Shown piece by piece: positions 1 to 64,000 of a stretch of 64,000 nt of DNA. Below the pieces are notes generated by a model. That model saw only the letters and a list, made by a program, of their open reading frames with translations, searched no databases and was not told where the DNA came from. The translations under genes were made by a program, and so were the position numbers. Source of the DNA: Vicugna vicugna (taxonomy: Eukaryota); the NCBI GenBank assembly GCA_013265495.1, contig MU057724.1:744001-808000 (forward strand). Direction: 5' to 3'. The first letter of the stretch is position 1. Each line of letters starts with the position of its first letter.

Positions 1-736
1 CTGCTGTTTGCGGGGCTCAGTGTCTCCGGAAGATGCAACCTTGGTTTCTGCGGAAATGGCCTTCCCTCCACCCCTCAGCCCCAGTTTTCTATGGCTTTTC
101 TCTTTAAAGGTCTGAGCAGCTAAACCCAGGAGTCACGGAAACCTTTACCACCTCCATTTTTTGAAACTGTTGAAAATTCTGCCCAAAGACTGTAATTTAA
201 TCCTCGTTCTTAAATAATAGTAATAGCAGCACGTGTGGACGTGGCCGCGCCGGGCGAGCGGGGCCGCCGTGGTTCTCCTGCTGGACGCCTTCTGCGAGGT
301 TCTCTGTCGGGTGTAAGTGACCGGCCGTCGGTAAAGCCACGCCCAGTCTCTGTGGTGTGACGGACGCTACTTCTCCTGGTCCCTCGAGGTGGGCGTTATC
401 AGACGTTATCGGGAAACACTGGGCGATATCTTGCCGTCAGAGAAGAAGAGAGCAGCGCGTCCAGGCCCCTGGGCTCCCACAGCTCCCAGGACTTTGAGGC
501 TCGGGGTGGACAGCACCGTCGGCAGAAGGTGCTGGTGCAGACGGTCTGACGTGCGGGTGACGTCTGGACTGTGGGCGTCCCTGCGGGCATGACTGGCAGA
601 CGTGGTGGGAGGGGCTTCTCTCAGATCCTGAGCGTCCATTGAGCGCCTGCTGTGTGCTCCACATGCTGTGGCCGTGAGGGCTCCATCGCTCAGACCACCA
701 CCACCCAGGACTTCGACCCTGGAGTGCAGACTCAAC

Positions 737-800
737 CATCCATTCAACAGTTATTAAGCACCTACTGTGTACAAGGCAGACACAACTCCGTGCTGGTACA
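737..800 (-). mobile_element. LINE-2 3' tail fragment
   Basis: catccattcaacagttattaagcacctactgtgtacaaggc resembles the reverse L2 tail cattcaacaaatatttattgagcacctactatgtgccaggc. Confidence 0.55.
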
Positions 801-3140
801 CTTAATGTATTTCAGAACTCAGCGCGGTTCTGATTAGTTGGCAAACCTAGGAACTCATCGATTCACTACACGAAAAGTGAGACTTGTCCGACCCTGTCTG
901 TCCCCTGCCGGTACCTCAGTGCCCGCAGTCCTCTGTCGTCCCTGGGCCCCCACTGTTAGGGGAGGCCAGCCTCGCAGGGCTACGTGGTGAGTCCGCCCAC
1001 CTCTTCTACCCGGCGGAGAGGAGGCACGATGCTGAAAAGGGGAGACGGCTCTGGAGGGTCAGCCGTTCGGAGAGGGTGAGGGCAACACCGAGCGAGCGCT
1101 GCTTGTCCTGGGCAATCCTTGCCGAGAGGGAGTGGGGCGGGCGGGCAGGAGTGGGGAGTAGGGGCGAGAGAGCGGCCGTGGGTTTGAAAGGTGGGCTGTG
1201 TCCGTCCATCGCTCGCGGCGAGCGCGGACGGTCTCCCCGCGGCAGGGAGGCTTGTCACCAGCAGTGGCGATGGTCTGATCCCCCGGCATCTTCTTCCAAA
1301 TCTCTGCAGGACCCGGCTGACATCATGCTGTGCAGTCAAGATGCTCTAAATTGTGCTCTGCAAACCGTGAGGCGTCTCACGGGCACAGATCAGTAGTTTA
1401 TCCGCTACCAAGTGTGGGGGACTGGCCACTGCTGTCACACGGGAAACGTGCACGCATTTAGGGACCAACGAGAGGTGAGGGGGACAGCGGGCCCCTAGCT
1501 CGCACTTCCGTTTTCATACTGAGATAGGAAACCCCGGGCTGTGGCTCTTTCTTCAGTTGCCCTGGAAATCTGTCCTAGTTTTTCAGAAATAGAATATTCC
1601 ACTTCAGAAATAACACTCAGCCTTCCACTGAAGACAGCATGGATTGATTGCTGTCCCTGCCGCTGAGCTCTGCAGGGCGGTGTGCTCTTGGGGGCGCTTC
1701 TTCTGTTCATCTGGAAAGCCCTTTATGTGAAAAATGCACGCCAGCCCCACGCCCCTTCCATGAGCTGCTGGAACGCCCTGCATTAAAGGCATGCAGGGCG
1801 CTCCGCAGACGCTCAGAGACCCCAGACTGGAGTCCGGGGACTCACCTTTCTTCTGATTTGCAGTTGGAAGCATTTTGGAAGTTGGAAACGTAATTAAAAA
1901 CGACAAGAAACAGGTGATCCCTTCCTAACTTTCCCAAAACGATGCTATTCCAGGAAACGTAGGAGTCCGCTGATTGCAGAGGAACTCTGGCATCGCCCGA
2001 GGTACTGCTTGCAGTTTTGGACTTAGAGTTCCTAACCGTTTGCGAACCTATTGACTGTCTGCTGTTCAGGACGTGCCCTGCTCCTGGGTGACGCTGCCCT
2101 GTGCGTCCAGCAGTGTCTGTCCTCACACGTTCGCCGTGCCCAGTGGTCCAGACCTCCTGTGCTCTTGGAGGCGTCCTTGGAGAGAAGCCGTCAGGCCACC
2201 TGGCACCCCGCCTTCCCCGCCCTCCTGCAGGTAATTACCCTCGTAACGCGGCAAGAAAGGGCCTGAACCAACTGCCAGGCATGTTTGCAGGTCGTGGCTC
2301 CAGCCCTAACACAGGCTCTTAAACGACGCCCTGACACTAGGTTCCCAGACTGGAACGCAGCCAAGTGATTCTTAATTCATATAATTTACACAGCAGTGTG
2401 AATGGCTGACTCCAAGGGCAAAACACAGCAGAGGTCTGAGGGAAACAGTCCACACTGAGTTGCAAAATCAGACGCGATTCCACTTCCTGGGAGACTGGAA
2501 TGATCAGCCTTTGGAAGGGTTTGCCTCCTGTTCCTCTGCTTCAATGAGCGTTTGGAGGGCCTGGGACCAGACGGACGGGTGAGAGCGCCAGAGCTCCGCC
2601 CACCCCCACCGGGCGGCAGGTGCAGATGCGCGCCCTCCTCCAGGGACCACCGGCCGGTGGTGACGGGCTCAGTGGTGCTGCAGTAACCGAATTATTTCAT
2701 AAAGTGTGTTAGTGGAATTGAGCATAAGTCGGCACTGCGTTTTTTAAGGGGTAGTAAGCCATTAGAAGGGGGTTTGCCCGGAGGCGCACTTGTTCACGGA
2801 GCTGATGTGTGCCGCCGGCAGTGTGGTGTGGGACGTCGGGCTGTGGTCACTGACAGGAGGAGGGGGAAGCCAGCCTGTGACCTGGACATGCTCCCAGCCT
2901 GGGCAGGCGTGCCCAGGAGACCAGGAGCTTGTCACGTTCACATCCTGCGACTTCTGGTATGCGTTTCCCTCTGCAGTCCAAGGCCTTTCATTTTCCTGGA
3001 AGAGCCTTCCCTTTGCTCATCCCAAGGTTTCCGGGGCCTCTTGTGCGCTGCGTGCCGCCGGGGGGCCAGCTCTCCCTCCTGCCCCGGGCCCTCCCCGCGG
3101 CCGCATCCCAGCACTGCCGCTGCCAGCGCCCGCCTGGACA

Positions 3141-3316
3141 TTGGAAACCGGTTGGAGGTTCCTCAAAAAACCAAAAACAGAACTTCCATGTGACCCAGCA
3201 ACCGCCCTCCTGCGCGTTTATCCAAAGGAAATGAAAACACCGTCTTGCAGAGAGGCCTGCACCCCGTGTTCCTTGCAGCATTCGTCACGATGGCCGAAGT
3301 GTGGGAACCACCTAAA
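3141..3316 (+). mobile_element. LINE-1 (L1M) fragment, ORF2 3' end region
   Basis: ggaggttcctcaaaaaaccaaaaacagaacttccatgtgacccagcaac...tatccaaaggaaatgaaa matches a hallmark L1 segment. Confidence 0.8.
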
Positions 3317-3690
3317 TAAATACTTTCTAAGGTGAAATGGAGAGGTTGTAAATGTACCATTTACACAGACGTTGCTTTATGAGCTACAGGGTGAGCTCCC
3401 TGGGGACCGGCTCCCCGCGGGGTCGCAGGTGGAACGTGGGCTCCTCCCCACTTCACGTGGCTTTCCCAGCTTCCCAGACACATCCTGAGAAGGAAATTAA
3501 GACGGAGTCCGAGCTTCGGTGGCTGCTCAGCTGTTTTGATGTCTGTCAACAGCCTGCCCCTTTGCACCTCGTCACAGGGAGTGCCGGCCAGCTCTGCGGT
3601 GGTTTTGCTCTGGGAGGAGAATTGCCCCCATTGAGAAGCAGGAGTGGAGGCTGGTGTGGGACGTGCAACCTTGCGTTTTCGAGAGGCGCC

Positions 3691-4399: not shown

Positions 4400-5930
4400 T
4401 CGTGCAGCACGTGCACTTACAGGTGTCGCCTTCAAGCAGGTGTTTTAGGGTCTGCAAGGTAGCTGCCTACTCGCGTGTTCCTGGAAGCCTGTTCGAGCTC
4501 TCTTCCTGTTTCGCTGTCTCCTGGAGTGTCTCCCGTCCGTGCATCTGGATCTCCACCCTCCACAGCTGCGAGATGCTCCATCTTCTGGATGTAACACAAT
4601 GCAATAAACATTCCCTCTCCGAGAACAGTCAGGTGTTCTCCAGTCTCGTAGCTACAGCGGGTGTTTCCACCCTGACACGCTCCCTCCCCCGCGGTACAGA
4701 CGCATCCGCAGAATGAACCTGCAAGCGGGGTCTCGGGCTCAGCGGGTCTGCGCGTTGTGATGGGGGCTGGTGTCTCTGCCCCGCAGGCGGTGGGCGACAT
4801 GCATTCTCGCCAACGCCTGGGCGCCCGGCCCAAGCCGCGTCCCGTCGGGCCTTTGACCTTTGTTGTCAGCTGGGAGGTGAAAGGCTGAATTTCCGTGCAG
4901 CTTTCCTTTGCACCCAGTCTCACAGGGAACTGAGCACTTTTTCGCGTGTTTAGGAACTGCTTGACTGTCATCTTTTGTCAGCTGTTATGTCTTTGGCTTA
5001 TTTTCCATGAGTTTATGGAATCTCTACGTGTTAGGAAATCGGCCTTTTCTCTGTGGATCAAGTATTTTTTTTTCCAGCCTGCCCTCTGCCTTTGCCTCTC
5101 ACTTACGATGTTTCGACATGAGTGCTTCATTTTTACGTAATGAAGCGTGTTAGTCCTGTGCACGGCTTCTGAGTGTGTCTCATAGCTACCGCCGCCTTTG
5201 CTCCTCTGATGTGGGAAAACAGTTCTCTCCATGTTCCTCACAGTCCTTTTCCATCTTCGCTCGTGGCCGACGTGGCTGATTCATTTCGTGTCCTTGGTGT
5301 GAATCCTGCATTTTCTCCCCCAGATGACAACTCGTTCGTCGTAACGGCAGTCACTGAGTGACCGTTATTCTTCCCCTACAGCGTGAAGTGATTCCGTCAT
5401 GTAACACGACATTCGCAGGTGTGCTGGGGTCTGCACCAGGAGTTCTGACTCTGCCCCGTTGCTCTGCCTGGTCGCTGTTGCCTGAGGCCCACGCTATCTA
5501 ATTGTCACGGCTTTGTTCCTTGATTATTTTCTGGAAGCATCAGCGCCCACTTTTTTCCTTTTTCCCCAGAATTTTTCTTGTTTCTTTGGTTTTTGAGGGG
5601 ATTCACCCAATTTCAAAGTTGTCCCACCAGATTTTCAATGGGAGCATGTTACGTTTTAGACTTACTTAGGATGGAGAGCGTCTTGGAAACAGTCGTCTTA
5701 ATCACACGTGTGCTACAAGCGCTTCCGTGGGTTTGTTTCAGCCCCGAGGAGGCAGCTGCGACCTCCGCGTTCGCGCGCTCCGCCGTCTCCTGACCCACGA
5801 GCGTGAGGCTTCCCCCGGGCTAGCCGTGGTTTCTCGCGGGTTTCTGCGTGCAGGGGCCCCGACAGGTCACGGGGTGGTTTATAGTCACGTTAAAGTGAGA
5901 ACTTCCGTGTTGTGACTGAGATTCATACCT
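4400..5930 (-). mobile_element. Old LINE-1 (L1ME-like) 3' ORF2/3'UTR fragment, heavily diverged
   Basis: Colinear recall matches, e.g. gggctcagcgggtctgcgcgtt ~ gggtcaaagggtatgcgcatt, gagcactttttcgcgtgttta ~ gagcatcttttcatatgttta, acggcttctgagtgtgtctcatag. Boundaries approximate. Confidence 0.6.
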
Positions 5931-6576: not shown

Positions 6577-7870
6577 GCGCCGGCTCACCTGTTTTGGAGG
6601 GACGGGCTGGGAGGAGTTGAGCTCAGCCACAGGAGAGGGGAGAGGAGCCCAGATCTTCATCAGAACAGGCAGACGGAGCAGGGACTCGTATCAGTGGGCA
6701 CAGATTTTGAGGACACGGTGAAAAATCTGAGGTGGATGTGGGAAAACTCACCTGCCACGGATCGCGCCGTCTCCAAGGAAGGGGCACCGAGGTCGTTTCA
6801 GGAGCTCCCCCACGTCGGAAGCGCAGGGGCGCCCCTCGATTCACTCACTGGGTCCTGGTCTCTTTCAGGCCCAGCCTGCTCGGGGCCTGGCGGAGAATGC
6901 GGCCGAGACTGGAGATGTGTCACGGGACATTCGAGAGCAGCTGAAAGAGGGGGAATGGGGACGGCCGCATTTTAAACGCGCCGGAGAAGTGGGTGCGGGG
7001 ATCTCGGTGACGGCTCCATGTCGGCCGCTCTAACCGAGGAGGCAGCCTGCTCGCCCCCAGTCGCTCGTCCTGCACTGAGAAACCCAGCCTGACGCTGCAG
7101 AGAAACAAGCATTTTTAAGTTTGCACGCGCATTCTGCTCTTTGTAACCCTGGGTTTACTCGCTGGTACGTTGCGTACAACCTTTATGTCCGTCCGGGGAT
7201 GAGAGACTGGTCTGGAAACCTCCGTTTCGGTGGTGCGCTCGTCCGGCGTTGGTGTGAGATTCACGCTGGTCTCAGACAGCGAGGTGATTGCTAGTCTCTG
7301 TTTTCTAATCTTTGAGAAGATTTGTGTCTCCTAAAACTGGGAAGAAATGAGCAGTACGTGGACGGTCGCGCAGCCCCCACTGGGGCCCTGCCCGGCTCTG
7401 GGACTGAAGCCCTTTGCTCGCTGCTGGGAGCCTGCTCGGTCTGCAAGGTGGACGCTGTGCCCGCCTGACTTCTGGCGACACTCGTTGTGGACATTGAGTT
7501 CCACCTGCTTTTCCTCACCCATGCGAGCCCGCTGAGCCAAGGAGACACGTCAGGAACATCGTGGGGTCCTCACGCTGCTTCACACAGCTCAGTGGAAGAG
7601 CAGGCGGCCCCAAACCCAAGGGGGCAAATGCATCCTCGGAAGGTGATGAATGGGAGCAAACAGGGACCCGTGGCCGCAGCCAGGCAAGGGCGCGGGCAGC
7701 CCCCCTGCGGGGCAGCGAGCCGGGTCCCGCTGTCCTGCCAGGCACGCGGAGCAGCCCCGCCCCGCCCTCCTATCCACCTCTGTCAGCGAGCACGGTGACC
7801 CTCGGGGACACGTCCAGGGCGGGACGCTGGCAGACGGACGTGAGAATCCTTCCAGCAAGGCTGAGGTTTC

Positions 7871-7980
7871 TGGGGGAGCGAGGAGGGGTAATTAGGTCTA
7901 TTTACTTATTCAGTGGAGGAGGTCCTGGGGGCTGAACCCAGGACCCCGTGCCTGCTAGGCATGCACTGTACCACTGACCC
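7871..7980 (-). mobile_element. Camelid tRNA-derived SINE (Vic-1-like)
   Basis: ggggtaattaggtctatttacttatt...ggtcctgggggctgaacccaggacc...gcatgcactgtaccactga; homologous to the copies at 31758 and 41893. Confidence 0.8.
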
Positions 7981-8812
7981 CGAGTTTTTTTTTTTTTTCT
8001 TGAAAGGACACTTAAGTTACAAAGCGCAGGCACGCAGACGCGCTGCCCATTTCACAGGGCTCCCCTTGGGGAGGCGAAGGTGGCGCTGGGCTGGCCCCCC
8101 GGGTCTGCGCTGAGGGGAGCCCCCCTGGCTGCGGGACCACCATCCTCTTTTGTTGACTTAGCTCTCTTTTCTGTCTTGACTTTGCACTTTCTCAGGGTGT
8201 TTTGGGATCACATCCCAAGTAAACTCCATGCACTTAGATCCCCACCTCGGGCTGCTTCTGGGGGGCCGGCGGCAGGACCCTGCGTCCCCCTCAGGGCAGC
8301 AGGGCCACCGCCACGCTGGGGCTGGGGCTGGGGACGGAGCCCCGTGCTGCCTGCGGGCGGCTCTGCGTCTGGTTCTCTGTGCTCGCGGCACTGGGAGGAA
8401 GGGCGGTGGGCGGGGGCGACAGCTCCCTGTTGGAGGATGTTTAGATTGAGTTCAGACTTGATTTCAGTCTGAGTGCTCCGTCTTTAAACAAAATAGCAGC
8501 TGAGACATTTCCAAATGGATTGTTTTCAGTAACTTGTAAACTCTATTCTACACATGTAGTTTGCAAAGGCGTTTGCTGCCCAGAAAGAGTTCTCTCTGGT
8601 TAACCCTGGAAAAAGCAGCGGGTTCAGCACGTGCAACGTAAGATCCTTGAGATCGAAGCTCCTCAGGCTTCTGGCAGACAGACAGACAGTCAGACAGGCA
8701 GCCATCTCCACCCCCGGCCGTGACTCAGGCCGGTGGGAGTTCTTCCAGAAAGCAAGCCCTGGGGAGAAGACCGAGGGAGTGCGTCAGAACCTCGACCTGC
8801 TCCTTCTGTGTT

Positions 8813-8870
8813 TCATTTATTCACGGAGTGTTTACTGAGCATCAGGTGTGCTAAAGGCATCGGCCCACTC
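8813..8870 (-). mobile_element. LINE-2 3' tail fragment
   Basis: tcatttattcacggagtgtttactgagcatcaggtgtgctaaaggca. Confidence 0.45.
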
Positions 8871-10201
8871 AGTTGTGGGCTAGGCTGTGTGACATAATTT
8901 TGAGGACTCAGCCGGTTTGACTTCAAGTTTGACTCCTCTTGTCTGCTTTGTGTGCTTCCAGCTTACTTCTCATCCACTAGTGGACGGACTTGGAGGAGCT
9001 ATCGGCCTGCATTCGCCTGGGCCAGAGGCGGGGTGGATGGAGGCCCGTCGGGGATCTGAGGGGACATGGGCTGTGAGGAGCGCCCCTCCGCCGTCTGCAT
9101 GCCTGGGGCGCGCCGGGTGCTTTGGGAAGGGAGACGGGCAAGATGATGCACATTTTCGCTGGACCTGGGACGGAGCTGAGAGGCTGAAGACCAGGCTGGG
9201 GAGCTGCCCGCTGACCCGGCGCGAGAAGGTGCTGAGGGCGCGAGGCCAGCTGTGCTGCGGGGACCAGTCGCCGGCCCAGGCCGCCGCTCGGGATGCAGCA
9301 GCTCACCCTCGGACAGGCTGCGCGCCGGGCAGTTCTGCAGGGAGGGGCTCTGCCGCTCGGGCCCCTCAGAGACAGGCTGCTGGGGCCAGCACCGTCCTGA
9401 AAGCGGTCGGCTGGGGGTCACAGGGAGAAAGACCCCTGGAAGGTCCTGCGTTGGCAGCTACGTGTTTGGCTGGGACTTGTGACTCGTAGGGCGGAACAGT
9501 CACATGGTCTCGCCCACCCGAGAGAATGTCCGACGTGCGGGCCCACGGGGAAGGGCCGCAGGCGGTAGGGGCAGCACTGGCGGTGCCCCCTCTGTCTTTC
9601 CCCTCGGGGGCTGCAGGCCTGGCCAGAACACTCGGGCACCTGGTACCATGAGCACACGTGTTACAGAACACACTCTCTCCTCCTGCTCAGGAAAGGTAGT
9701 GTCTGTTGATACGGTGTCTGGCAGCATCCGGGTCATTTATTTGAGGAAGAAGATAAACTTTACCGTATCAACTGGTGTGAGCAAGATACGGAATAATGTG
9801 ACGATTTCATTCCTGCACATTTTTCCTTTTAAAGGCCAATCAGAAAGCCTCACCGTTCTAAGGGAAAGAAGCATGTTGGCTTCCAGTCATCTAACAAATC
9901 ACTTGACTCCTTTTTCGGTGCTGAGCTAGACGACGTGCCAAGACATGGTAATTAACCGAACCGAGAGAGAAAGGGGAGAGAATAGACATTTGTTCTGAGC
10001 GGGTGTTACGCAAACCTGGATGCGCGCTGTCCACCGGGCAGGCGTGATGCGTCTTGTTGGGTTTGGTGCGAGGAGCAAGCTGTGGGTTACCTGGGGAGCG
10101 CTGTCCCCACCCTCGTACAGAGCGCGGCGAGAAGTTTACAGGTTTCCCTCTGTGACAGTGGTAGCCACACAGCTCGACCCGGGAGGGAAGGAAGCCCCAG
10201 T

Positions 10202-10330
10202 NNNNNNNNNNNNNNNNNNNNNNNNNNNNNNNNNNNNNNNNNNNNNNNNNNNNNNNNNNNNNNNNNNNNNNNNNNNNNNNNNNNNNNNNNNNNNNNNNNN
10301 NNNNNNNNNNNNNNNNNNNNNNNNNNNNNN
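10202..10330. other. Assembly gap (129 N)
   Basis: Run of N bases. Confidence 1.
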
Positions 10331-11604
10331 TCTCTAAAGTCCCTGTTCTCTGTTCTCCCCAGGGCGACACTCCTGCCACCCTCATTCTGAAAGGAGGTCG
10401 CGTCACATGATTCTTAAGCGCTGGGCGTACACCTGGGTCCCTGCACTGGGGAACAGGCGGGGGTCTGGGTTTCTTAACCTTCATCGAGAACCGCTGCTGC
10501 AAAGCTGTGTGTCCTCTCCCCCATGGCTGCCCTCTCTGGTTCAGGCTTGCAGAGGAGGCCCAAACTCCACTGTTTGATTCAGTTACATGAGCATCTGGGG
10601 GCATCTGCTCTCGGCCCTGTATTCACCCCTGACGACAGTAAACATTAGAATCCTGGCCCGTAAGGAGCTTGGTGTGTCTCGAGAGAGACTGGACTTATGA
10701 GCAGCTGTTTAAGAGCACTGGGGGCACCTGCACCCCAGGCATCCTGCCCTTTCCTGAGTCCAGGGTGACACCTGGGGGGGCTGCCTGGTCCGGTGACTCC
10801 CGGCAAGACAAAAGCGTGGAGGCTTCTGAGTGTCTGAGGGTCACTGCCAGCCCCGCTGCAGGTATGGCCGGCCTCAAACTGGACGCCTTACCTCCTTGGT
10901 CGCCGGATTCGAGTCTGCATGACGAGCTCCGGAGATTCAGGCTTGTTTCAGTTTCCACGTTCGGCCTGCCCCGAGACGCGCCTGTTCGAGGCGATTGCGT
11001 CCTTTCTGGAAGTGGAGACCAGATATGGCCGGGTCTGGGCTCGCTCAGGGCCCTGCTCTGTTTTGCAGGGAGGCACGTCTGGGCTTTTCCCTCCCAGGAT
11101 GCTTTCCGTGCACACCTGGGCTTCAGGAGTCCCCCGCCCGGGGCGGTGCCCCTGCAGCCCAGCAGCCGTCAGGAGGTGCCCTGTGCTTGGCCGATGAGTC
11201 AGTGGGGCTGACCTGCTTGTGTTCTAAGCGGAACCCTGGCTTTTTGCCACAGCCGACGGTGATGTATTTGTTTCAGGACAGAGTACCTCGCTACTAATGA
11301 CCCTCTCCTGACACATCTCTTAGTGTCTGGCCCGCTGCTGTGAAGGACCCGGCCCTAAGGAGAGCGACAGCGTGCGGGACAAGTCAGATGGACCCAGCGG
11401 ACGGCGGCATCGGGCTCCTCCCGCAAGAAGCCGCCGGCGAAGACATGCATGCAGAGAGAGGCCTACACGGGCCTGGGGCCCCCTTCCGGGCGCTCACGGC
11501 TCAGGAGAGAGCGGCTGGCCTCCCTGGCCGCCCCACCCCCAGCAGCACAGCCTCCCCTGGGCCCTGGACGGCAGGGCAGCTCCCCTCCTGGCATTAACAC
11601 TTCA

Positions 11605-11760
11605 GGGCCTGGACGTGGCGAGCTTCCCCTTCACTCTCTGTGGGACTTGGACATGTTTCAGCCTCATCTACCCCTCTGTGTCCTCATCTGAAAAGTGCAG
11701 AAGGTACAGCCTCCAGCAGCCAGGATGGAAGTCCACGTGAGACCCAGTGAGGCCGTGGGC
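11605..11760 (+). mobile_element. MIR SINE fragment
   Basis: ctctctgtgggacttggacatg...ctctgtgtcctcatctgaaaagtg resembles the MIR core ctgtgtgaccttgggcaag...tcctcatctgtaaaatg. Confidence 0.45.
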
Positions 11761-11841
11761 GCCGCCTCTGCCTTCATTCTGGGGGGCTGCCCGGTGACGG
11801 CTGAGCCTGGGCTGCAGGCACGTTCAGTAGTCGTGTCGCTG

Positions 11842-12161
11842 CAGACGGTCCCCGACTTGAGGTGGTCTGACTTAGGATGCTCTTGACTTGATGATGGTGT
11901 GAAAATGATCCACGGTCAGTGGAAACCAGACGTTGAAGTGTGAATTTTGCCCCTTCCCCGGGCAGCGATGCAGGAGACACGGCTTGTGACGGTGGGCGGC
12001 CACCCCAGTCGCTTCCGAGTGCTCGGAGCCCGGGTCGGGTGGGCTGGGCCGAGCTGCGGTGCTCGGGAGGTCAGGTGTGCTGAAGGCACTTTTGACCCAG
12101 GGTATTTGAAACTTCCGGTGAGTCTGTTGAGATATGAGCTCCTCATAAGGGGAGAATATCG
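11842..12161. mobile_element. Tigger-derived non-autonomous DNA transposon (MER47-like)
   Basis: cagacggtccccgacttgaggtggtctgacttaggatg...gatggtgtgaaaatgat...gtggaaacc matches the recalled end cagatggtccccgacttacgatggttcgacttacga; far end ggagaatatc ~ gaggagcatctg. Confidence 0.6.
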
Positions 12162-13090
12162 TCCGCTTGACAACGGCTTTGTTCAAAGTTCACCCTGCGC
12201 CGTCCATCCAGAGCTAGTCACGGATGACACTGACGTTCAGTGTGCATTTGTATTTTTAAAAAAAACGCTTCGTATGCGAGGATAGCGTGTGCTAATATTA
12301 TTAGATGATTCTGCTTGACTTCTTAGTAGGTTTACAGACTAGACGTACAATACGTGCAGATCTGACATTCTGTCCGTCCGACATGTTAACGGCTGCTCAG
12401 AGGAAACTGGGAGAGACGTGCATACGAGTAATCCAAAGTTTAGTTGCCCTGAAAGATAAGATGTGCTGGTTGGAAGGAATTCTCACTGCACACGGTTAGT
12501 ACTCCCTGGGATGAACGGTGCCAACGTGAAGTTTACCTGGAGGACTGCAGGATAAAGTTAACACGAATACGTCGACACTGCAAGTATTTTTCCCGCTCCG
12601 TTCTCCTCCTGGAGTCCGGGAAGCCCTGCATTCGCTTCTTTATGTATGAGCCATCTTAGCTGCCAAAAGGAATGGAAACTGCAGCACAAAGTGAGACGCG
12701 GAAGGTTTGGGAACAGGGTTTGAAGTGGGGGGTGGCATTCTCCCACCTCCTTACCCCGAGGGAGGGGACAGTGGGAAGCGGGGGCTGGCCGCGGACGGGC
12801 TCCCAGCAAACACGGGGCCTCAGTGAATTCCCAGGGTGGGAGGTGGGTGGGAACGGAGGCAGAACAGCCCACGGCCCCCTCCAAGTGGGCGGAGAGACCG
12901 GGGCTTCAGGTCAGCAGGTGTGGGGGAGGAAAGCACACAGTCTACACCGGAGATCCCCCGGTTCTCGGCAGAGAGAACCCTGCCTCCAGACCACTGTCAC
13001 TGCTCTTGTCCATCTGTGTGTGCATGTCTTGTGTGGATGGTCACCTCGAAGAGAAACAATTCACATAAGAGGATGTGGATTAAGAGGAGC

Positions 13091-13313
13091 TAAGTCGGTA
13101 TCCGCAGGCCCCAGACTCCCAGTTTACCCCCCGCCCCACCCCCGCCCCCAGTAACTGCGCGTCTGTGTTCTACGTCTGAGCCTCCTTCTGTCGTGTAATA
13201 GTGACCCGCCGTGAAAAAGAGTGTGTGTGTGGATATGTAGTAACTGGGCCACTGTGCTGAACACCAGACACTAGCACAGCGTTGTAAGTCAACTCTATTT
13301 CCGTTTTTAAAAA
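13091..13313. mobile_element. Short 5'-inverted LINE-1 3' end (artiodactyl-type tail)
   Basis: 13091-13200 is antisense L1 3'UTR (ccagactcccagttt...cagtaac...tctacgtctgag). 13205-13313 is the sense L1 terminus (tgaaaaagagtgtgtg...caccagacactagcacagcgttgtaagtcaactctat...aaaaaa). Confidence 0.7.
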
Positions 13314-17327: not shown

Positions 17328-17790
17328 TTTTCCTAACAGACCTTATTTTTCAGGACAGTCCTAAGTTCACAGCAGAACTGAGAGGAAGAGGCCGAGATTT
17401 CCCACGCCCCTCCTGCCTCCTGCTCACCCCCGCCCATGGTCAGCACCCCCCCCAGATGGCAGGTCTGTTACAGTCCATGAACCACACTGACACGTCATGA
17501 GACCCGGGTCTGGGGCTCACTCCAGGGCCCGCTCTCTGGTGCGCAGCCTCTGGGTTTGGACATGTTGTGTCGTGTATCCACCCTATGGGACTTCTTTAGC
17601 CCCCAGGCGATCCTGACCTCTTGCTCACCTACCTGTCTGCCTGGCGGTTGTAAGGGCTTCCCTCGTGTGTGATTTCCTTCCAACGCCACGGTTTGCTGGG
17701 GAAGCCCTGCGTGGTTAAAACGTCCCCATCCCCGGGGACGTGCTTCAGGGCGCCCTCTGTGGCCATCGGAGGTCGGTGTCAAGAAGTGTT
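17328..17790 (-). mobile_element. LINE-1 (L1MC-like) 3' end
   Basis: agaccttatttttcaggacagtcctaagttcacagcagaactgagaggaag...gagatttccca...ctgacacgtcat...gggtttggaca matches the recalled L1MC1-type tail. Confidence 0.65.
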
Positions 17791-19119: not shown

Positions 19120-19475
19120 CTGGAAGGGTAGTCGACTGGCAGTGTCAGTGTCAGGTGTCCAGCAAAGCAACTCGGTTGCACATACACATGTGTGCACGTG
19201 AACATTTCTCAGATTCTTTTGCATTCTGTCATTGCATGAGATTAAATCTAGCTCCCTGTGCTCTGCAGCAGGCCCTTGTTGTTTATCTGCTCTGTGCACA
19301 GTAGTTTGTATCTGCTAATCCCACGCTCCTGATTTATCCGCCCTCCCCCTCCCCTTTGGAAACCGTGTTTGTTTCCTGTGTCTGTGAGTCTGGCTCTGTA
19401 AATAAGCTGATGTGTGCTATTTTTTGGCTCCTTAGGAGAGGTGAGGTCATATGCTATCTGTGTGCTCTGACCTCA
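19120..19475 (-). mobile_element. LINE-1 3' end (L1_Art/L1MA9-like)
   Basis: tcaggtgtccagcaaagc...tccctgtgctctgcagcagg...tagtttgtatctgctaatccca...gtctgtgagtctg...gtaaataag. Confidence 0.75.
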
Positions 19476-38452: not shown

Positions 38453-38699
38453 GGGACTGACCACCTCAGGCCTGCAGCTCAGCGAGGCCGAGTGAGGTCA
38501 AGTGGTGACCTGTCTCCTTTCTGCCAAATCTAAGTAGAAGACTGACCCCATCACGGAGGGCCTAGCCCCAGCACATTCGACGGAGAGACGGGCCGGAGCT
38601 GGGACCCACGAGAAACGTAATTACCACTCACTGCCTTGTTGAAAGAACGTGTCGCGGCTTCACCTAATCCCTGTCTTTCCTTCTCGCCCCTGAGAACCA

Positions 38700-40377: not shown

Positions 40378-40470
40378 ATTTATTCATTCAGCAAACATTT
40401 GTGGATGTGTGTGTTCCAGAGGACGTGCTGGGTACCAGGAACTTATATGTTAAGACGCTCTGTCCAGTGA
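40378..40470 (-). mobile_element. LINE-2 3' tail fragment
   Basis: tattcattcagcaaacatttg...gtgctgggtaccagga. Confidence 0.45.
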
Positions 40471-40486
40471 AAAAGAAAGGTATCAA

Positions 40487-40507
40487 CAAAACAAAACAAA
40501 ACAAAAC
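40487..40507. repeat. (CAAAA)n simple repeat
   Basis: caaaacaaaacaaaacaaaac. Confidence 0.85.
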
Positions 40508-41892: not shown

Positions 41893-42006
41893 AGAAGGTA
41901 CAGCTCGGTGGTGGAGTGTGTGCTTAGCATGTGCAGGGTCCTGGGTTCAATCCCCAGTCCCTCCATCAAAACCAACAGATAGATCTAATTACCTCCCCCA
42001 AAAAAG
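41893..42006 (+). mobile_element. Camelid tRNA-derived SINE (Vic-1-like), ~300 bp beyond the SNAI2 poly(A) site, opposite strand
   Basis: aggtacagctcggtggtggagtgtgtgcttagcatgtgcagggtcctgggttcaatccccagtccctcc...ctaattacctcccccaaaaaa. Confidence 0.85.
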
Positions 42007-42314
42007 TTTTGAAAAGCAGTCTTGACTATTAACAATGTGAATATTTTTAGCATTCAGAAAGCGTGATTCTTGTTACAGAGATATGCTAACAAACTCCTAT
42101 TCTGATGTTGCCTTTCTGAATGTAACAGTATTATCTTAAGAGTAAAGAAAAAATACGGGTTGCTTATTCTAATCTATCAAAAAATAACACTTGATATTCA
42201 TGGTAAACACTGTTCACTTTTTCTCTTATGAACAAAAGAGACAATTCTTTGTATAACAGTTTGGCACTCATCATAAAGTCAGTCAAGTCTCTGAAAGTCG
42301 TATACAAACAAGAG

Positions 42315-43364
42315 ATTTTTAAATCAAAAATGTTTATTGTAAAAAAAAGAACCTTGAAAATTGCTTTTTAAAAAAGAGACATTGATTTCACAAGTCTTTA
42401 GGTTGTACGTAGGCGGCAGCTCTAGACAACCTCTCACTGTCACACAAAACTCATTCAATCATAGAAAAATAAACATGAATTTACACTGACTCGTCAACCA
42501 ACGCTGCTGTTCTTTAGAAAGGCACTTGGAAGGGGCTGTGTGAGTTGCATTTGTGGTCTGCATTTCACTTAGTTTAAGTACATGACAGTTTCTAAAAATC
42601 CTTTGTTGCACATAGTCCCATCTTTAGTTAATTGCAAAAAAAAAAAATAGAAATCATTAAAAAATCCATCAAAAAAAGGAAGACACGGAGTATGCACCAG
42701 GAATGTTCAAAGCTAGTCTTCCTCGTATCCCTCAAGGCACTGAATGTGTATTGGCGAAGAAAGGACAAAAAACACGTTTAATACATTCTCCTGTGTTTTT
42801 TGTAAAACTTGTTCTCCCTCTGTCTTAAAAAAAATACAGTTTAAAGCATCACGGGTGGGTAATCAAACCAGGCTTTCGTTCAAGGATGGTGACCAGACAT
42901 CACACATGTGATAAAGTAAACTTGGAACACTCCGTAAGGCACCTGAGAGAGTGTCTGGTCGATTCTCTTCCCATAGGAAATCTGATCACAAACTCCATTT
43001 GAGGCAATACTTTCCGTTGAAATGATTTGGCAGCAGTGTAAATCTTTGCGTTCTTTCTTGAGAAGAAGATGTGATGTGCTTTTTGCTTCATCTTTGAAGA
43101 CAAAGATCCTTGTCTTTTATCCCCTCGATCTAGCTATCAGGAAATAGATAGTAATTTTAAACTTCACATGGAAAGGATTAACTCTAAACACATGGATTCC
43201 GTGCTCGCGCAGCATGTGCGTGTGTGTACGTGTGTGTACGTGTGTGTGTGTGTACATATTGTTTGGTCGGTAAGCACAAGAGAAAATGCCTTTGGACTTT
43301 TACTTGTTGTTTGGAGGCGGAGTGAAGAAATGCCTTGTGTTCGAGTAAACACTGGCTGTGTCAC
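42315..43364 (-). other. SNAI2: SNAI2 3'UTR (3' end approximate)
   Basis: AT-rich segment after the stop codon with a CA-rich repeat (43215-43255) and several miRNA seed matches; ends shortly after AATAAA at 42338-42333. Confidence 0.85.
42333..42338 (-). terminator. SNAI2: SNAI2 polyadenylation signal AATAAA
   Basis: + strand TTTATT. mRNA context UUUUUUUACAAUAAACAUUUUUGAUUUAAAAA resembles the recalled human SNAI2 3' end. Confidence 0.85.
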
Positions 43365-43546
43365 TCAGTGTGCCACACAGCAGCCAGACTCCTCGTGCTT
43401 GTGCAGCAGGGACATTCTGGAGAAGGTTTTGGAGCAGTTTTTGCACTGGTATTTCTTGACGTCCGAGTGTGTCTGCAGGTGGGCCCTCAGATTTGACCTG
43501 TCTGCAAACGCCCTGCTGCAGTGAGGGCAGGAGAAGGGCTTCTCCC
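43365..43546 (-). CDS. SNAI2: SNAI2 coding exon 3 (zinc fingers 4-5, stop)
   Basis: CCAG acceptor at 43550-43547. 182 nt encoding (G)[62 protein letters not shown]. Total CDS 79+546+182=807 nt = 268 aa. Confidence 0.99.
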
Positions 43547-44411
43547 CTGGGGGCGGGGCGGGGGATGGAGAGAGAAAGACGGTCAGTGCTTTCAGAGGAA
43601 ACAAGAAGCCAGGTCACATTTATGAGTAACAGCTACATTTTGCCAAAAGAATGAGAAACAGCAAAACTTGATTACATTTCCCCAGAGTGCATACTTATTT
43701 CAATGTCTGGCCCTTTAAGATAAATTTGCACTTTGCCTTAAAAACAGCAAATTTTAAAAAAAAGAGAGAGAGAATATTCTGCCTGCTGCCAGTCACGCAG
43801 AAATAATTCCTGCAGCTCTGGGGCTTCACTGGTAGAGCACTGGCAGGTGCAGCTGAGGGCAAGCTCCTCCCCAAGCTTCCCAGCATTTCTCCTTTCCCCT
43901 CCTGCCGTGTTATAAGCGAGGCTGGACAGATGCCTTGACACCCTGCAGGGTGATTTTGTGCTAGGAATAGAAAATTCAGCAGCAAAACCCAAACCAGACC
44001 GACCATCAGAAGCAAATTCAGCCTTGCCACCCAGCTCGCTGGGGGGTGACAGGTGTCCCCTTCATCTGCCTGTCTGCACCCTCAGTTCAGCTAGCCACGC
44101 GTGTATTGCTGATTTCAGGGAGCTGCTTCACAGAAGCCACATTCCCGGACTGCCTTCCTGACTTTCTAACTGATCTTTGAGACCAAACCCTCCGAGTCTA
44201 CTTCCCAAAGCCTCAGTGCTGCTTGCGGCCTCTGGGGCAGAGGCTGTGAGCCAGCCCTTCGTGCCCCGACCACTTTCTGAGTCGGCAGGAAGAAGCTACA
44301 GATGGTCACCCATCATGGAAAGCACTGTGTCGCTGCTTCATGCAGACAGGACAGGCAGCCCCGAGCTTCCTCCTGTCGGACAGCAACGCCCCGTCCCCGT
44401 TTTCCTCTTAC

Positions 44412-44957
44412 CAGTGTGCGTTCTAATGTGTCCTTGCAGCAGCCAGGGCCTGGAGAACGCCTTGCCACAGATCTTGCAGACACAAGGCAAGGTGTGGGTC
44501 CGAATGTGCATCTTGAGGGCGCCCAGGCTGACATACTCCTTGTCGCAGTATCTGCAGCTGAAGGACTTCCTGGCCTGGGCGCCGCAGTGCAGCTGCTTGT
44601 GCTTGCCCAGCCCCGAGAAGGTGGAGTAGGTTTTGTTGCATAAATTGCACTGAAACTTTTCAGCTTCAATGGCGTGAGGGTCTGAGAGCTTGGACTGTAG
44701 TCTTTCCTCTTCATCACTAATGGGGCTCTCCGAGCCGCTGTGGTCCTTGGACGAGGTGTCAGACGGAGGAGGGGGACTCACGCGCCCCAGGGATGAGGGG
44801 TATCCGGATAGAGGAGACAGGCCGCTGGGCGGCGGGCCGTGGAACGGGGCGGCGGCGGCCCACACGGTGATGGGGCTGTAGGCTCCCGAGCTGAGGATCT
44901 CCGGCTGCGGGATGACGGGCACGGAGTAGCTCTCGTAGAGGTACGGGGAAACGATCA
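44412..44957 (-). CDS. SNAI2: SNAI2 coding exon 2 (SLUG domain, zinc fingers 1-3)
   Basis: CAG acceptor at 44960-44958. 546 nt encoding (V)[10 protein letters not shown]...[13 protein letters not shown]...[10 protein letters not shown]...[22 protein letters not shown](G). GTAAGA donor at 44411. Confidence 0.99.
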
Positions 44958-45662
44958 CTGCGGGGTGGGGTGGGGCGGGAGGAGAGCAAGGTGAAACAAC
45001 GTGGAAGCACCCTAGGAGGCGACTGGGCAACACGCACAGGACTTGAGGACCGGGGGGGGGGCGCGCTCGTGGGGAGGACGCGCGCAGGGAGGGCATTCCC
45101 TTCCCTCCCCCAGTGCTGGCGGTCCTTGTGCTTAAGGCATGTCCGCGGAGGGTCCCAGGGGCCGGCCCGGCCCTGCGGTCAGCGAGCGCGGCCGGGCCCG
45201 CGCCTTCGCCGTCCCCGGCGAGGGGGAGCCTCCCACCCTTTTGAAAGATACGGAAAAGTTGCTTCCATTTTCTGCGTGGGCTGCTGGCAGGGCTTACGAC
45301 CGTGAGCACAAAGATGTGCGTGAATCAAGCTGCTTTCTAAAGGAAGGGAGCCTTAGTACATGAAAAAAAAGGCAACAATTCACCCTTTACGCATCGCCTC
45401 ACTCATCCTCCACGTACTCATTATGCAAGTACGCACACGCTTCAGAAAATGACGTTGCAAGAGTAGAACGGAGTCGTCCTTGCCAGTTAGGAGTTTGAAA
45501 AGTTTTGAATTAAAACGGCCTAGATGATCAAAGGAACGCCCGCTCTTTCAGGTCGCCGTTTAGCGGCAGACAGCTCAGCCTCTCGCTCTTTTGGAACCGA
45601 AGCTGAGCTGCAGCGGACACCAGTATTTGTCTATTTACGGGCAGATAAAGGTCCCTGTTTAC

Positions 45663-45741
45663 CTGTGTGTGTGTCCAGCTCGCCATAGTTGGGCTTCTTG
45701 GAGGCGTTGAAATGCTTCTTGACCAGGAAGGAGCGCGGCAT
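45663..45741 (-). CDS. SNAI2: SNAI2 (Slug) coding exon 1, SNAG domain
   Basis: Reverse complement reads ATG CCG CGC TCC TTC CTG GTC AAG AAG CAT... = MPRSFLVKKHFNASKKPNYGELDTHT plus 1 nt (79 nt), followed by a GTAAAC donor at 45662. Confidence 0.99.
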
Positions 45742-58471: not shown

Positions 58472-58702
58472 CCTTTTTACAGTTTTTATTAAGTTATAGT
58501 CACTTTACAATGTTGTGTCAAATTCCAGTGTAGAGCACAATTTTTCAGTTATACATGAACATACATATATTCATTGTCACATTTTTTTCTCTGTGAGCTA
58601 CCACAAGATCTTGTATATATTTCCCTGTGCTGCACAGTATAATCTTGTTTATCTATTCTACATTTTGAAATCCCAGTCTGTCCCTTCCCACCTCCCGCAT
58701 GG
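58472..58702 (-). mobile_element. Young 5'-truncated camelid-type LINE-1 with 13-bp target-site duplication
   Basis: tttttattaagttatagtcactttacaatgttgtgtcaaattccagtgtagagc...; flanked by tctgtaacatttt (58459-58471) and tctgtaacatctt (58703-58715). Confidence 0.8.
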
Positions 58703-60270: not shown

Positions 60271-60327
60271 TTAGAAGCGATTTTCAGGATAAACAGATCC
60301 ACATCCCTAGATGTGAAACGAACGTTT

Positions 60328-60760
60328 AGCAGTGCGATTGCTGGGCCAGACGCTGGTGCCGTGTTCTGGGTTTTAAAAAACTGCCCAACTATTTTTACCA
60401 TTAATGGCCCCGCCCACAGCTGGGGCGGGTGTCCTGTTTCCTTGTTTTCTCACTTTTCCGGTTCTTGTTGTAGACGTTTTGTACGCGTGGTGGCATCTCA
60501 CTGTGGGTTCAGTTTGCGTTTGTCTAGGGGCGAGTGGCGTGAACGGCCTTTCGCTCCCCGCCTTGCGCGCGCGGCCGCTTTCCGTGGCCATAACCTCGCC
60601 TTCCCGACGGCGGCTTTCCTTTCCACCCGTCCAGGCAGAGTGTCACACGGAGCCAAGGCTCTTCGTTCTGATGCAGTCCAGTTTATCAAATGTGTTTGTC
60701 AGACTATGCTCTAAATTGCCTTTCTAAGAACTCTGCCAACCCTAAATCTCAAAAACTTGG
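60328..60760 (-). mobile_element. Old LINE-1 (L1MB/MC-like) fragment
   Basis: gtgcgattgctgggcca, aaaaactgcccaactattttt, gtggtggcatctcactgtgggttcagtttgcgttt, ttctgatgcagtccagtttatc, tctaagaactctgccaaccc. Confidence 0.75.
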
Positions 60761-61236
60761 GGGAAGTCAGACATTTTTTTATGTGTTTTATCCTTGTTTC
60801 CTCTGGTTCTTGTTCTGTTTCTCTTTTCTTAACTTCCTTCAAGTCATCTGCACGTTCTGTGCGCCCGCATCTGAGATACTTGCGGTGTAAGTAGTTACGG
60901 TGCTTTGAACGCGCGGCCCATACAGCTGTGTCACACACATCCACGTGTGTGCACAGACACACGGGCGCAGGCGGAGAAGAGGGAAGAGATGTATTTGTAC
61001 GTATATTTGTGTTTTAATTCCCTGTTACCTGCGTCCCCGGAGTAAAGGCTGCAGGGAGGGGCCACCGCCACGCCCACATGCACGCCGAGTGGCCGGCACG
61101 TGGCCCAGAACGTGGATCGTGACCGGGGTGGCTGATTCGAGAGCGAGGACCCCTCGCTGGGCTGAGCGGGGGGCCGCAGGCAAGCAGCCCTCAGAAGGGG
61201 CGTTTGGAGGAGGCCGAGTAGGCTAGTGACACCGCC

Positions 61237-61250
61237 CCTGCAGGAGGCAG
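61237..61250 (+). promoter_or_regulatory. CTCF-like motif
   Basis: CCTGCAGGAGGCAG, one deviation from CCWSYAGRKGGCRS. Confidence 0.35.
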
Positions 61251-64000
61251 CCCAGCGCTCTGGGCGGACAGAGCTCCTACGGGCCGGAGACTGGCGTTCG
61301 TCAGGCGCGTAGGACAGCGTCCACGGGAGAACTAATGTCCAAGGGTGACAAACACCCGCCGTCTGCCGGAAATGCCGTGGCGACTTCAGCCCCTGCTTTC
61401 CGTTCTATTGTGGACAGAGAAGACACACCCTGTTGGCCTCAGGATTCCTCCCGAGACCACGGGATTCTTGGAAGCAAAAATAGCAGCGCGGCGCCTGGCA
61501 CAGAGCAGGCAGTCTGCACGCAGCTGCTGGGCTGGGCCGCGTGCTGGAAGGCTGGCTTCCCTCCTAGCCCGTCATCTGACGGTGACACGTGATCTCCACT
61601 TCCTGCATCACAATACGACTTCCCCAGTATTGCTTCAGGATTTGCTAGTGCTCGTCTGTGAGCTCAAGATTGGAACTTTTTCTTCCCCCTCAACTTGTGG
61701 GTGGTTTTTGACGTGTTTATGGGCTGTTGAGCAGTCAGTGTTGCTAAGATGCTGGGTGGGATCTAAAACACCGCTGGTCCCAAGTGGGCATTTGCCATCT
61801 CTGTTCTGAAGGGAAAAAATACTAGTGCGTCCCAACCTAGGCACGGGTTTTATTTAATTCCTGGACATTCTTCATTGTGCCTCTTGAAAGGATTACAAAG
61901 TGTTTCATTTTGTGATCTCAGTTTTTGATGAAATATTTATAAACTCTTTTTTATGAGTCTGAACAAACACTTGTGGGTTTTGGACCCTGAGTTTTCATAA
62001 ATATTCATTGAAAAACCATAAACACTTCATCCCTTGTATGGAAAATTTAATGAATTAAAAGTAACAAAGTGGGTAATTAAGAGAAAACAAACAGCATATT
62101 CCCATTAGATATGAACGAGTGGCTTCTGTTTTGTTTACTCTGAACCCATTACAGATTCTATGTTATAAAATAACATCTGTGAATTTGCTGTCATTGGATG
62201 TGTTGTAGCATGAACACTGCAGAAAAGATGTGCTAATTCTGTTAGAAATTCTCAATAAACTCAAAATCAATTCAAAGATACTTCAGTGTAGGGTGCTTCA
62301 CAAATGGGCTACATTCAGCAGGAATGTGAAGTGGCTGTGAGGCTGGACTGGTTCTTAATGATGAGGGAAGAGAGCTCTAAAGAAGTTCTCTGAAGGGAGC
62401 CCTTCACCTCTAACACGGTTCCAGGTTCTGTAATCCAACTCCAGTGGACACATCCCCGGAGACCTGCCAAGAGAGGCTGCAAATAGTTCATGATCTTTCC
62501 CGGACTCTCATGTGCAACTGGAGATGAACTTAAAAGTAAAAGGAGAGCGCCGGCTGGGTTAAACTGTGACAAGGGCCACAGTGTGTCATGTTTTCAAATA
62601 CACACACCAACTTGAGGATTCTTATGTATAAAACCTTGAAGGATATTTAAAATTTAACGACCCTGTTCTCACAAGGAAAGATAAAGGCCTAGGAGAAATG
62701 TATGCTGTCTTGCTCGCCGAGCACAAAATCCAGACCGAGACGGACTGGCTCCTGCTTCTCATTAGCCCTTCTTTACCAGCAGGTACGAGTGAAAACAGTA
62801 CACCGTGGGGAGCAAACACAAGGAAACTCGACTTGGTTCATATGATTAACTCAAAGCACAGTTAAACCTGGAACTCACCTCTGATTTCCAATTTTTAGTC
62901 CTGAAATCTGCACTACATTTCTTCCCAATTCTATGAAATAGAAATGGTCTTACTAACAAAGATGAACAATTTATAATTCAACGGTATATTATGCACCGTA
63001 GATTACAGTTTGTGACTCTATGATGCATTATTCAAATTCTGTGCTTAGACGTGCCCTGTTGCCGGAGGGTCCTCGCTGGAAACACGTGGAGGCAAAGGCG
63101 GTGGCAGGACCCCGAGGGAGGTACCCATCAATGCGTGCCCGTCTTGGAAACCAACAGGTGAAGAGCAGCTTGCTGGAGGGATTTCGTCAGCCTGACCGAG
63201 CAGGTTAGACGTACGTTCCCAGAGAAACGTGTTTTAATTAGAGCTTAAAGCAGCCTGAGCCCTCGTCTGATGGGGGCCCTAGGCTGACGGGGGTTGAAGC
63301 ACCTTCCTTCCCTCGGCTTGATGCTTTCCGGCCAGCATGCCACCTACCACGGGGCAGCTGAAAAGTTGCGTCAGCTAGAACAGTTTTGTGCTTTCATCGT
63401 GTGGGAAGGGGCCAGGAAAGAAATACATGTTTCAGTGTAACAAAGAGCCTTGAAGGAATCTAACTTCCGAAGCCTCCTTGCTCCGTGGGTCCCTGGGCTC
63501 CGTGCTGAGACCCCCTGACAAGGGGTCTTCACTCTGAGCACTGGTGATGTGATGATCCCCACCCCCTGGACAGCAGATAGCCTCAGGGGTGTCCCTCCAC
63601 CCCTCGCCCTGCTGGAAATACTGCGTCGCACAGTCGTCGAGATGGTGCTGCCGGACAGCTGCTCCCAGGGCCCCTCAGAACCAGACACGCCCAGGAGCCC
63701 AGCGTCGGCCGCTCCCACTCTGAGTTGCGTGAAGACGTGCAGGCTTCACAGACTCCTGCTCTGTCCCACTGTGACTCCTCACTCCCCCGGCGCAGTTACT
63801 ACCTGACCCCAGGTCCAGGTGCTGGGGACTGGCGGGGATGATAAAATAGAAGGAAAGACAAACACGTTTGGCCCTAAATAAAGTGTGGACGAGGGGCGGT
63901 GGCTGGTCAGAAATGGGGCCTGGGCAGGAATTATGAAAACGTCAGAACATCTGCACCCACTCACCAATAATCTAAAGTGAGTGTGGATTCGGGAACGGAG

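Follow-up and report, generated by a model that had tools for sequence, protein, structure and literature searches.

The 64,000-nucleotide stretch of Vicugna vicugna DNA analyzed here (contig MU057724.1, positions 744,001 to 808,000; hereafter the window) is the camelid SNAI2 locus, and its sequence carries a pronounced excess of changes from A or T (W) to G or C (S). On the branch private to the window, 154 W-to-S changes were counted and 17 S-to-W changes. We consider it likely (probability about 0.8) that this locus has undergone A/T-to-G/C fixation over tens of millions of years, most likely through GC-biased gene conversion (gBGC). The direction and size of the bias, the classes of sites it affects and its phylogenetic timing are read directly from alignments of orthologous loci.

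The complete SNAI2 coding sequence lies at 43365-45741 on the minus strand, in the AT-richer middle of the window. It is a three-exon gene whose product begins MPRSFLVKK and has an N-terminal SNAG motif and C-terminal C2H2 fingers, the latter matched by zf-C2H2 in Pfam:

45663-45741, minus strand: SNAI2 exon 1, coding part, with the ATG at 45741 (homology)
44412-44957, minus strand: SNAI2 exon 2 (protein search), GC at third codon positions (GC3) 0.78, 33 CpG
43365-43546, minus strand: SNAI2 exon 3, coding part with the stop codon at 43365 (homology)

Orthology to named SNAI2 proteins was borne out. In a protein search made with exon 2 only, this exon matched them at E 3e-117, with the best identity (93%) to Tursiops (dolphin), and dolphin was also the sequence closest to the window in the alignment.

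Direction of substitution around SNAI2

We compared SNAI2 and 10 kb on each side with the orthologous loci of dolphin, African wild dog (Lycaon), elephant, bat, a pecoran, a hippo and an equid. GC contents upstream of the gene, in the gene and downstream of it, and CpG observed/expected ratios (o/e), were as follows:

window: 58/56/51% GC; CpG o/e about 0.6
dolphin: 56/52/48% GC; CpG o/e about 0.6
hippo: 56/52/47% GC; CpG o/e 0.45-0.61
pecoran: 50/53/44% GC; CpG o/e 0.27-0.62
wild dog (Lycaon): 45/44/37.5% GC; CpG o/e 0.13-0.46
equid: 41/40/37% GC; CpG o/e 0.17-0.26
elephant: 42/42/39% GC; CpG o/e 0.23-0.38
bat: 37/38/33% GC; CpG o/e 0.11-0.25

The eight species were aligned globally with MAFFT, and 4540 of about 22,000 columns were kept after filtering. 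Changes were polarized by parsimony; a state counted as derived only if all four non-artiodactyls had one base in common, and a change was called private to the window only where all seven other species share another base. The branch counts were:

window-private branch: 154 W-to-S, 17 S-to-W
artiodactyl stem: 78 W-to-S, 9 S-to-W
Cetruminantia stem: 52 W-to-S, 3 S-to-W
Whippomorpha stem: 19 W-to-S, 0 S-to-W
pecoran branch: 95 W-to-S, 40 S-to-W
hippo branch: 64 W-to-S, 17 S-to-W
dolphin branch: 45 W-to-S, 17 S-to-W
wild dog branch: 91 W-to-S, 28 S-to-W
bat branch: 33 W-to-S, 109 S-to-W
equid branch: 26 W-to-S, 50 S-to-W

Per-site rates on the window branch were 0.121 for W-to-S and 0.019 for S-to-W, with an equilibrium GC content (GC*) of 0.86 (p 4e-19). 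The W-to-S changes comprised 118 transitions and 36 transversions, the S-to-W changes 17 transitions and 0 transversions, and GC-conservative changes were few (8 between A and T, 10 between G and C). Silent, replacement and non-coding sites showed the bias alike. Relative to the outgroups, GC was higher by about 0.17 where columns are unconserved and by about 0.08 where conservation is strongest. Most of these changes lie outside CpGs, as 115 of the 154 window-private W-to-S changes created no CpG. In a five-species alignment, 31 CpGs were gained on the window branch (20 arose from TG or CA) and 0 were lost. The original prediction, made from the letters of the window, had proposed gBGC as the process, and the skewed counts, the one-sided transversions, the low number of GC-neutral changes and the involvement of all site classes speak in its favor.

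The coding sequence of SNAI2, for which codons were counted exon by exon in frame and split codons skipped, repeats this pattern. Exon 2 GC3 is 0.69-0.72 in the other artiodactyls and 0.49-0.52 in the four species outside Artiodactyla, all below the value in the window. Silent changes private to the window were 12 W-to-S and 2 S-to-W, and those on the artiodactyl stem 17:0. Eight window-private replacements were found: six W-to-S (T60A, T61A, L69P, D152G, S155A and K162R), one GC-conservative (A67G) and one S-to-W (P38S). K162R lies inside zinc finger 2, and D152G and S155A lie in the linker between fingers 1 and 2. Stem replacements were M39V and N219S (both W-to-S), A144G (GC-conservative) and one at residue 67. 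Apart from K162R, the MPRSFLVKK start and the aligned zinc-finger regions were conserved in all eight species, and SNAI2 is, judging from the sequences compared, otherwise near-invariant. Positions 20 and 29 show homoplasy with canid and equid.

Could these counts be an artefact of mis-assembly, contamination, misaligned orthologues or parsimony mis-polarization at hypermutable CpGs? Diverged non-coding DNA was aligned globally and only about a fifth of its columns were kept, and the window contains an assembly gap:

10202-10330, no strand: assembly gap of 129 N, with no bridging contig

We compared contigs from four runs (four labelled organisms, four studies) with the reference around the gap. 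Left contigs extend 47 letters past 10201 and right contigs carry 81-111 letters before 10331, but no contig in the four independent runs bridges the gap, and continuity across it is therefore unproven. None of the features claimed here touches the gap, no reading frame runs through it, and 129 N in 64,000 leave the composition result unaffected. Long contig pieces of the four runs cover the compared stretch and differ from it at about 0.4-0.8% of letters. Moreover, the coding sequence, which is aligned unambiguously, has the same direction of bias, and the same pipeline returned an S-to-W excess in bat and equid. Parallel CpG decay is no explanation, since a private call requires seven species to agree, and most W-to-S changes fall outside CpGs in any case. 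We therefore regard an artefact as highly improbable.

A regional mutation process that supplies mostly A/T-to-G/C changes, through error-prone repair or replication-timing effects, would make the bias mutational rather than one of fixation. Substitution counts alone cannot separate the two, and recombination may itself be mutagenic. Variation among the contigs bears on this question. Across 7400-13300 (5.9 kb), 30-42 differences from the reference were seen in the contigs of each run (0.5-0.7%), and nucleotide diversity there looks high for a mammal. Unpolarized W/S variant counts were near 1:1 in the four runs. Among the listed W/S singletons in five haplotype samples (40 of 68 sites, taken from assembled contigs and not reads), the lone allele was W in 16 and S in 5. 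Rare alleles mostly stem from new mutations, and the supply of mutations at the listed sites thus looks AT-biased, unlike the 9:1 GC-biased fixation and opposite to what a GC-biased supply would give. This suggests that the locus receives the usual AT-biased mutation input and fixes it with a bias towards GC. The GC shift is halved in constrained sequence, the GC-neutral classes are not raised, and amino-acid replacements, though the protein is very conserved, run almost entirely from W to S (6 window-private against 1 S-to-W), as expected for a fixation bias competing with selection. Together, these results make a mutational origin quite improbable. Three reference-private A-for-G differences (9226, 9235 and 9248) are clustered in a 23-bp stretch of the contig-covered region.

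The original prediction had implied that the enrichment is lineage-specific, with comparison to orthologues as the way of telling a recent from an ancient origin. This part was not supported. The bias is already evident on the artiodactyl stem and on the next branch, that of Cetruminantia, and the pecoran, hippo and dolphin loci are themselves GC- and CpG-rich; by the prediction's own yardstick, the enrichment is therefore ancient within Artiodactyla. Outside this order the comparison came out differently, as GC and CpG enrichment was absent from the equid, bat and elephant loci and only moderate in the canid. CpG has been lost from the pecoran SNAI2 flanks (o/e 0.27-0.34), which gives the impression of a conversion regime that became weaker in pecorans.

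LINE-1 relics in the window

Six LINE-1 (L1) elements had been named in the original prediction, together with the claim that their substitutions run from W to S and create CpGs. We searched for L1 homology with Pfam, a Protein Data Bank (PDB) search, blastn, tblastn and phmmer, against L1 open reading frame 2 (ORF2) and natural L1 copies. Six pieces proved to have it:

27483-27910, plus strand: relic of the L1 ORF2 3' end (PDB, blastn, phmmer); 51% GC, 18 CpG in 27480-27900
3142-3312, plus strand: relic of the L1 ORF2 3' end (blastn to natural L1 copies, ORF2 search)
7118-7330, minus strand: L1 ORF2 reverse-transcriptase piece, amino acids 501-558 (phmmer); 52% GC, 15 CpG
24280-24534, minus strand: L1 ORF2 piece, amino acids about 1066-1115 (phmmer); 60% GC, 17 CpG; next to 25145-25770, one of the originally named segments
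19242-19425, minus strand: L1 3' end piece (blastn); 47% GC
58474-58663, minus strand: L1 3' end piece that has not been rewritten (blastn); 29% GC, 0 CpG

The plus strand of 27487-27810 matched residues 1147-1218 of the L1 ORF2 protein (ORF2p) in the PDB at E 1e-4 and natural L1 ORF2s at E 5e-11, and many natural L1 copies aligned by blastn to 3142-3295 and 27482-27910. Two of the originally named elements, 27494-28253 and 3141-3316, are thus borne out as L1 ORF2 relics, at 27483-27910 and 3142-3312. The other four (4400-5930, 17328-17790, 25145-25770 and 60328-60760) gave no L1 match at E<0.01 with Pfam, PDB, blastn or phmmer, and tblastn yielded only weak collinear scraps at 4540-4985 and 60723-60824, both on the minus strand. 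These four segments may be older L1 families or untranslated regions (UTRs) outside the references compared. Pfam searches of ten stop-free pieces returned SNAI2 zinc fingers only and no L1 domains. Two strings quoted from the first relic are each present once, at 27736 and 27778, and the reported CpG counts of 11 in 27721-27870 and 8 in 3181-3300 are exact.

Only natural L1 copies were compared with the relics. They were collected from a seed, protein P0001, the one match of a word-based protein search with the L1 piece. The coding sequence of P0001 lies on two metagenome contigs, L001 and L002, whose L1 3' end is AT-rich (37% GC, CpG o/e 0.27). Scans seeded with it also found L008, a full-length L1 in which ORF1 and a 1280-codon ORF2 are open. 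L1 contigs were screened by length, GC and Alu-start, and those that might be human L1 were excluded: L003-L007, from bacterial assemblies, and L015, L032, L061 and L070, from human-gut or similarly named metagenome series. A young human L1 origin of L008, L009 and L039 was considered and rejected, as their match to human ORF2p (PDB) amounts to only 1.3-1.6 bits per residue. For polarization, the window piece, a natural copy and L008 were compared three ways, and a unique state was assigned to its own branch.

Compared pairwise with L001, the relic at 27483-27898 has S where the reference has W at 86 sites and the reverse at 28; for 3142-3312 these numbers are 37 and 7. Three-way comparison placed 63-81 W-to-S and 15-23 S-to-W changes on the window branch for 27480-27900, and 23-31 and 7-11, respectively, for 3130-3330. 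Both relics therefore have a 3-5 fold W-to-S excess on the window branch. Control natural L1 copies were balanced or biased from S to W (L001, for example, had 6 W-to-S vs 20 S-to-W). Where both references agree, CpGs of the relics stand opposite CA, TG, TA, CT or AG and never opposite CG, and most arose from CA, TG or TA. For these two relics, then, the claim that W-to-S substitutions created CpGs is well supported. The piece at 19242-19425 (minus strand) showed a milder excess (12-22 W-to-S vs 3-15 S-to-W), and 7118-7330 could not be tallied because it had no reference match at the DNA level. In an alignment of 42 L1 sequences, the asymmetry was blurrier than in the pairwise or three-way tallies. 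L012, L014 and L051, which are foreign L1 3' ends on metagenome contigs, are also GC-shifted, with 46-51% GC and 5-13 CpG per about 300-500 bp; judging by their sequences, similar GC rewriting of L1 has evidently occurred in other hosts.

Composition of the window and the case for gene conversion

Over its 64 kb, the window has 55.3% GC, a CpG o/e of 0.63 and a GpC o/e of 0.96, in agreement with the locus-wide high CpG originally reported. Exclusion of the SNAI2 gene and promoter left the remainder at 55.6% GC and a CpG o/e of 0.63. All 2-kb bins have a CpG o/e of >=0.37. With CpG-island criteria of GC >= 0.5 and CpG o/e >= 0.6, the window as a whole qualifies (0.553 and 0.63), as do 58 of 128 segments of 500 bp; the median CpG o/e of these segments is 0.60. 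The enrichment is thus domain-wide, but the uniformity implied by a locus-wide claim was not found: the domain is a mosaic, in which 18 of the 128 segments have GC <45%, chiefly at 40-43.5 kb, 56-59.5 kb and 62-63 kb, and in which the L1 piece at 58474-58663 has stayed AT-rich.

1-64000, no strand: GC- and CpG-enriched domain, a mosaic with AT-richer patches (composition)
38001-40000, no strand: strongest GC patch, 66% GC, CpG o/e 0.79, about 3.5-5.5 kb downstream of the SNAI2 stop codon
40001-43364, minus strand: AT-richer stretch, 41-43% GC, SNAI2 3' UTR and downstream sequence (composition)

In the 2-kb bin matching 38001-40000, GC is 54% for dolphin and 34-44% for the non-artiodactyl loci (Lycaon, elephant and bat). 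The patch is a candidate for a conversion hotspot peculiar to camelids or for a newly arisen CpG island. The stretch at 40001-43364 is AT-rich in all compared species, and the smallest GC shift was found there.

High CpG o/e throughout the window might also be expected if SNAI2, as a Polycomb-regulated gene, sat in a very large domain unmethylated in the germline, in which CpGs survive, perhaps with added selection for CpG-rich regulatory DNA. SNAI2 does encode a developmental transcription factor, and its promoter has a CpG island (44-46 kb, o/e 0.73); hypomethylation may, as the original prediction proposed, contribute to CpG retention. However, slower loss of CpG makes no G or C, and most of the W-to-S changes create no CpG, and 36 of the 154 are transversions. 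CpGs were also gained de novo on the window branch, and those of the L1 relics stand opposite CA, TG or TA in natural copies. The surroundings of SNAI2 have 33-42% GC and a CpG o/e of 0.1-0.4 in equid, bat and elephant; the CpG-rich state is therefore not a conserved regulatory requirement. Finally, conversion alone appears sufficient. With bat and equid as near-neutral references, we roughly estimate a population-scaled conversion strength B of about 2.9-3.4. At a B of 3 and a CpG hypermutability of about 12-fold, the standard gBGC fixation formula predicts a CpG/TpG ratio near 0.8, and 0.67 was observed (3070 CpG vs 9221 TpG plus CpA), which on this rough calculation leaves hypomethylation unrequired. 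We judge hypomethylation quite improbable as the principal cause.

The preferred reading is thus a fixation bias towards G and C, since the changes reach all site classes, include transitions and transversions, leave GC-neutral classes unraised, are weaker under constraint and have overridden purifying selection. Under gBGC, meiotic recombination would produce heteroduplex mismatches whose repair favors G/C, and in a persistently recombination-active region this conversion would act like selection for G/C alleles. It would drive GC to an equilibrium near 85%, offset the loss of CpG to TpG and favor the gain of CpG from TpG or CpA, and in neutral DNA, dead L1 copies included, CpG o/e would approach about 0.6. 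Constrained sequence such as the SNAI2 3' UTR and conserved elements would resist and remain as AT-richer patches, and weakly deleterious W-to-S amino-acid changes could still be fixed in SNAI2. From these patterns we infer that recombination-linked conversion was the cause and that recombination is high around this locus, which is probably close to a chromosome end. Dolphin SNAI2 is 1.06 Mb from the end of its chromosome.

Several points weigh against this reading. Hippo SNAI2 is chromosome-interior (94.8 of 174.7 Mb) and pecoran SNAI2 is about 20-22 Mb from an end, and both loci are still GC-rich, so that past position effects or slow decay are needed to account for them. The camelid link to recombination is inferred. 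The orthologous test is limited to 33.4-55.7 kb of the window and to mostly conserved columns, and its polarization is by parsimony; elsewhere in the window, the evidence is composition together with L1 pieces, of which two are clear and one is moderate. The L1 piece at 58474-58663 (minus strand), with its low GC and lack of CpG, has about as many W-to-S as S-to-W changes. The variant evidence is small, with 40 of 68 sites and contigs instead of reads.

The window has other features of note. A GC-rich minisatellite lies at 26174-26315 (39-bp unit, 3.6 copies, 98% matches); such minisatellites are common in recombination-active, chromosome-end regions. No telomere repeat was found in the 64-kb window, and an Rfam search of it gave no match. 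Self-comparison of the window found nearly no internal repeats, which makes comparison of copies within it impossible. Three copies of a tRNA-Ala-like short interspersed nuclear element (SINE) lie at 41894-41993 (plus strand), 31791-31874 and 7887-7977 (both minus strand), and are too short for a W/S tally; the head of this SINE was the sole product of ARAGORN on the window. Contig word depth in sequencing runs is near 50,000 at 7794-7990, and the SINE family is therefore very high-copy.

Relation to known cases and significance

The mechanism is already known, and the SNAI2 locus is a new, unusually large and well-polarized example of it. According to the summary on Fxy (Mid1) of Mus musculus in PMC2631073, the 3' half of this gene moved into the pseudoautosomal region, all 28 of its replacements are W-to-S, and the rewriting is attributed to very high recombination and gBGC. 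Fxy and SNAI2 are alike in that a conserved gene and its non-coding DNA took on nearly pure W-to-S changes, at silent, intronic and replacement sites in Fxy (PMC2631073). They differ in tempo and extent: Fxy changed within a few million years of its documented move into the pseudoautosomal region, whereas at SNAI2 the bias has persisted since the artiodactyl stem, over at least 64 kb. Unlike for Fxy, no rearrangement or recombination estimate is on record for the SNAI2 locus. In primates, hotspots of biased substitution, accelerated exons and human accelerated regions (HARs) are more frequent close to telomeres (Berglund, Pollard and Webster 2009, PMC2631073), and rodent proteins have undergone episodic gBGC (PMC12290510). 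As at SNAI2, clustered W-to-S changes in these cases override purifying selection and fix amino-acid changes in proteins that are conserved (PMC2631073, PMC12290510). The primate and rodent cases are mostly sub-kilobase and short-lived, whereas the SNAI2 domain extends over tens of kilobases and has been maintained on several deep branches.

GC peaks and CpG islands that result from gBGC and not from hypomethylation are also familiar, as in the 'BGC' CpG islands of primates and the GC peaks of canids after PRDM9 loss. Like the window, these owe a CpG-island-like composition in neutral DNA, repeats included, to a W-to-S fixation bias. They usually span 0.5-2 kb, whereas about 45% of the 500-bp segments qualify over 64 kb here. 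A full-text literature search found no paper linking gBGC to SNAI2 evolution or to camelids. The SNAI2 case is new in its scale (at least 64 kb), in the identification of the gene concerned, in having its onset dated to the artiodactyl stem and in its effect on the protein.

A broader interpretation, which we offer tentatively and consider rather doubtful, is that recombination and conversion have stayed active around SNAI2 throughout Artiodactyla for >60 million years, in a stable domain that has far outlived the usual turnover of PRDM9-type hotspots, and that camelid SNAI2, a master regulator of the neural crest and of epithelial-mesenchymal transition (EMT), was pushed off its conserved sequence. 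If so, the fixed SNAI2 replacements could carry a measurable functional cost or compensation.

The SNAI2 locus is a natural experiment on the reach of a non-adaptive fixation bias. A neighborhood that is AT-rich and CpG-poor in equid, bat and elephant has here become DNA that mostly passes CpG-island criteria, in which dead transposons have come to resemble regulatory islands and a deeply conserved developmental transcription factor has been altered. The branch counts, with the bias present on the stem, strong in the camelid and weaker in the pecoran, form a dated series for the persistence and decay of a conversion domain. For annotation, CpG-island or accelerated-evolution calls in such camelid and artiodactyl regions should not be taken to indicate function or positive selection.

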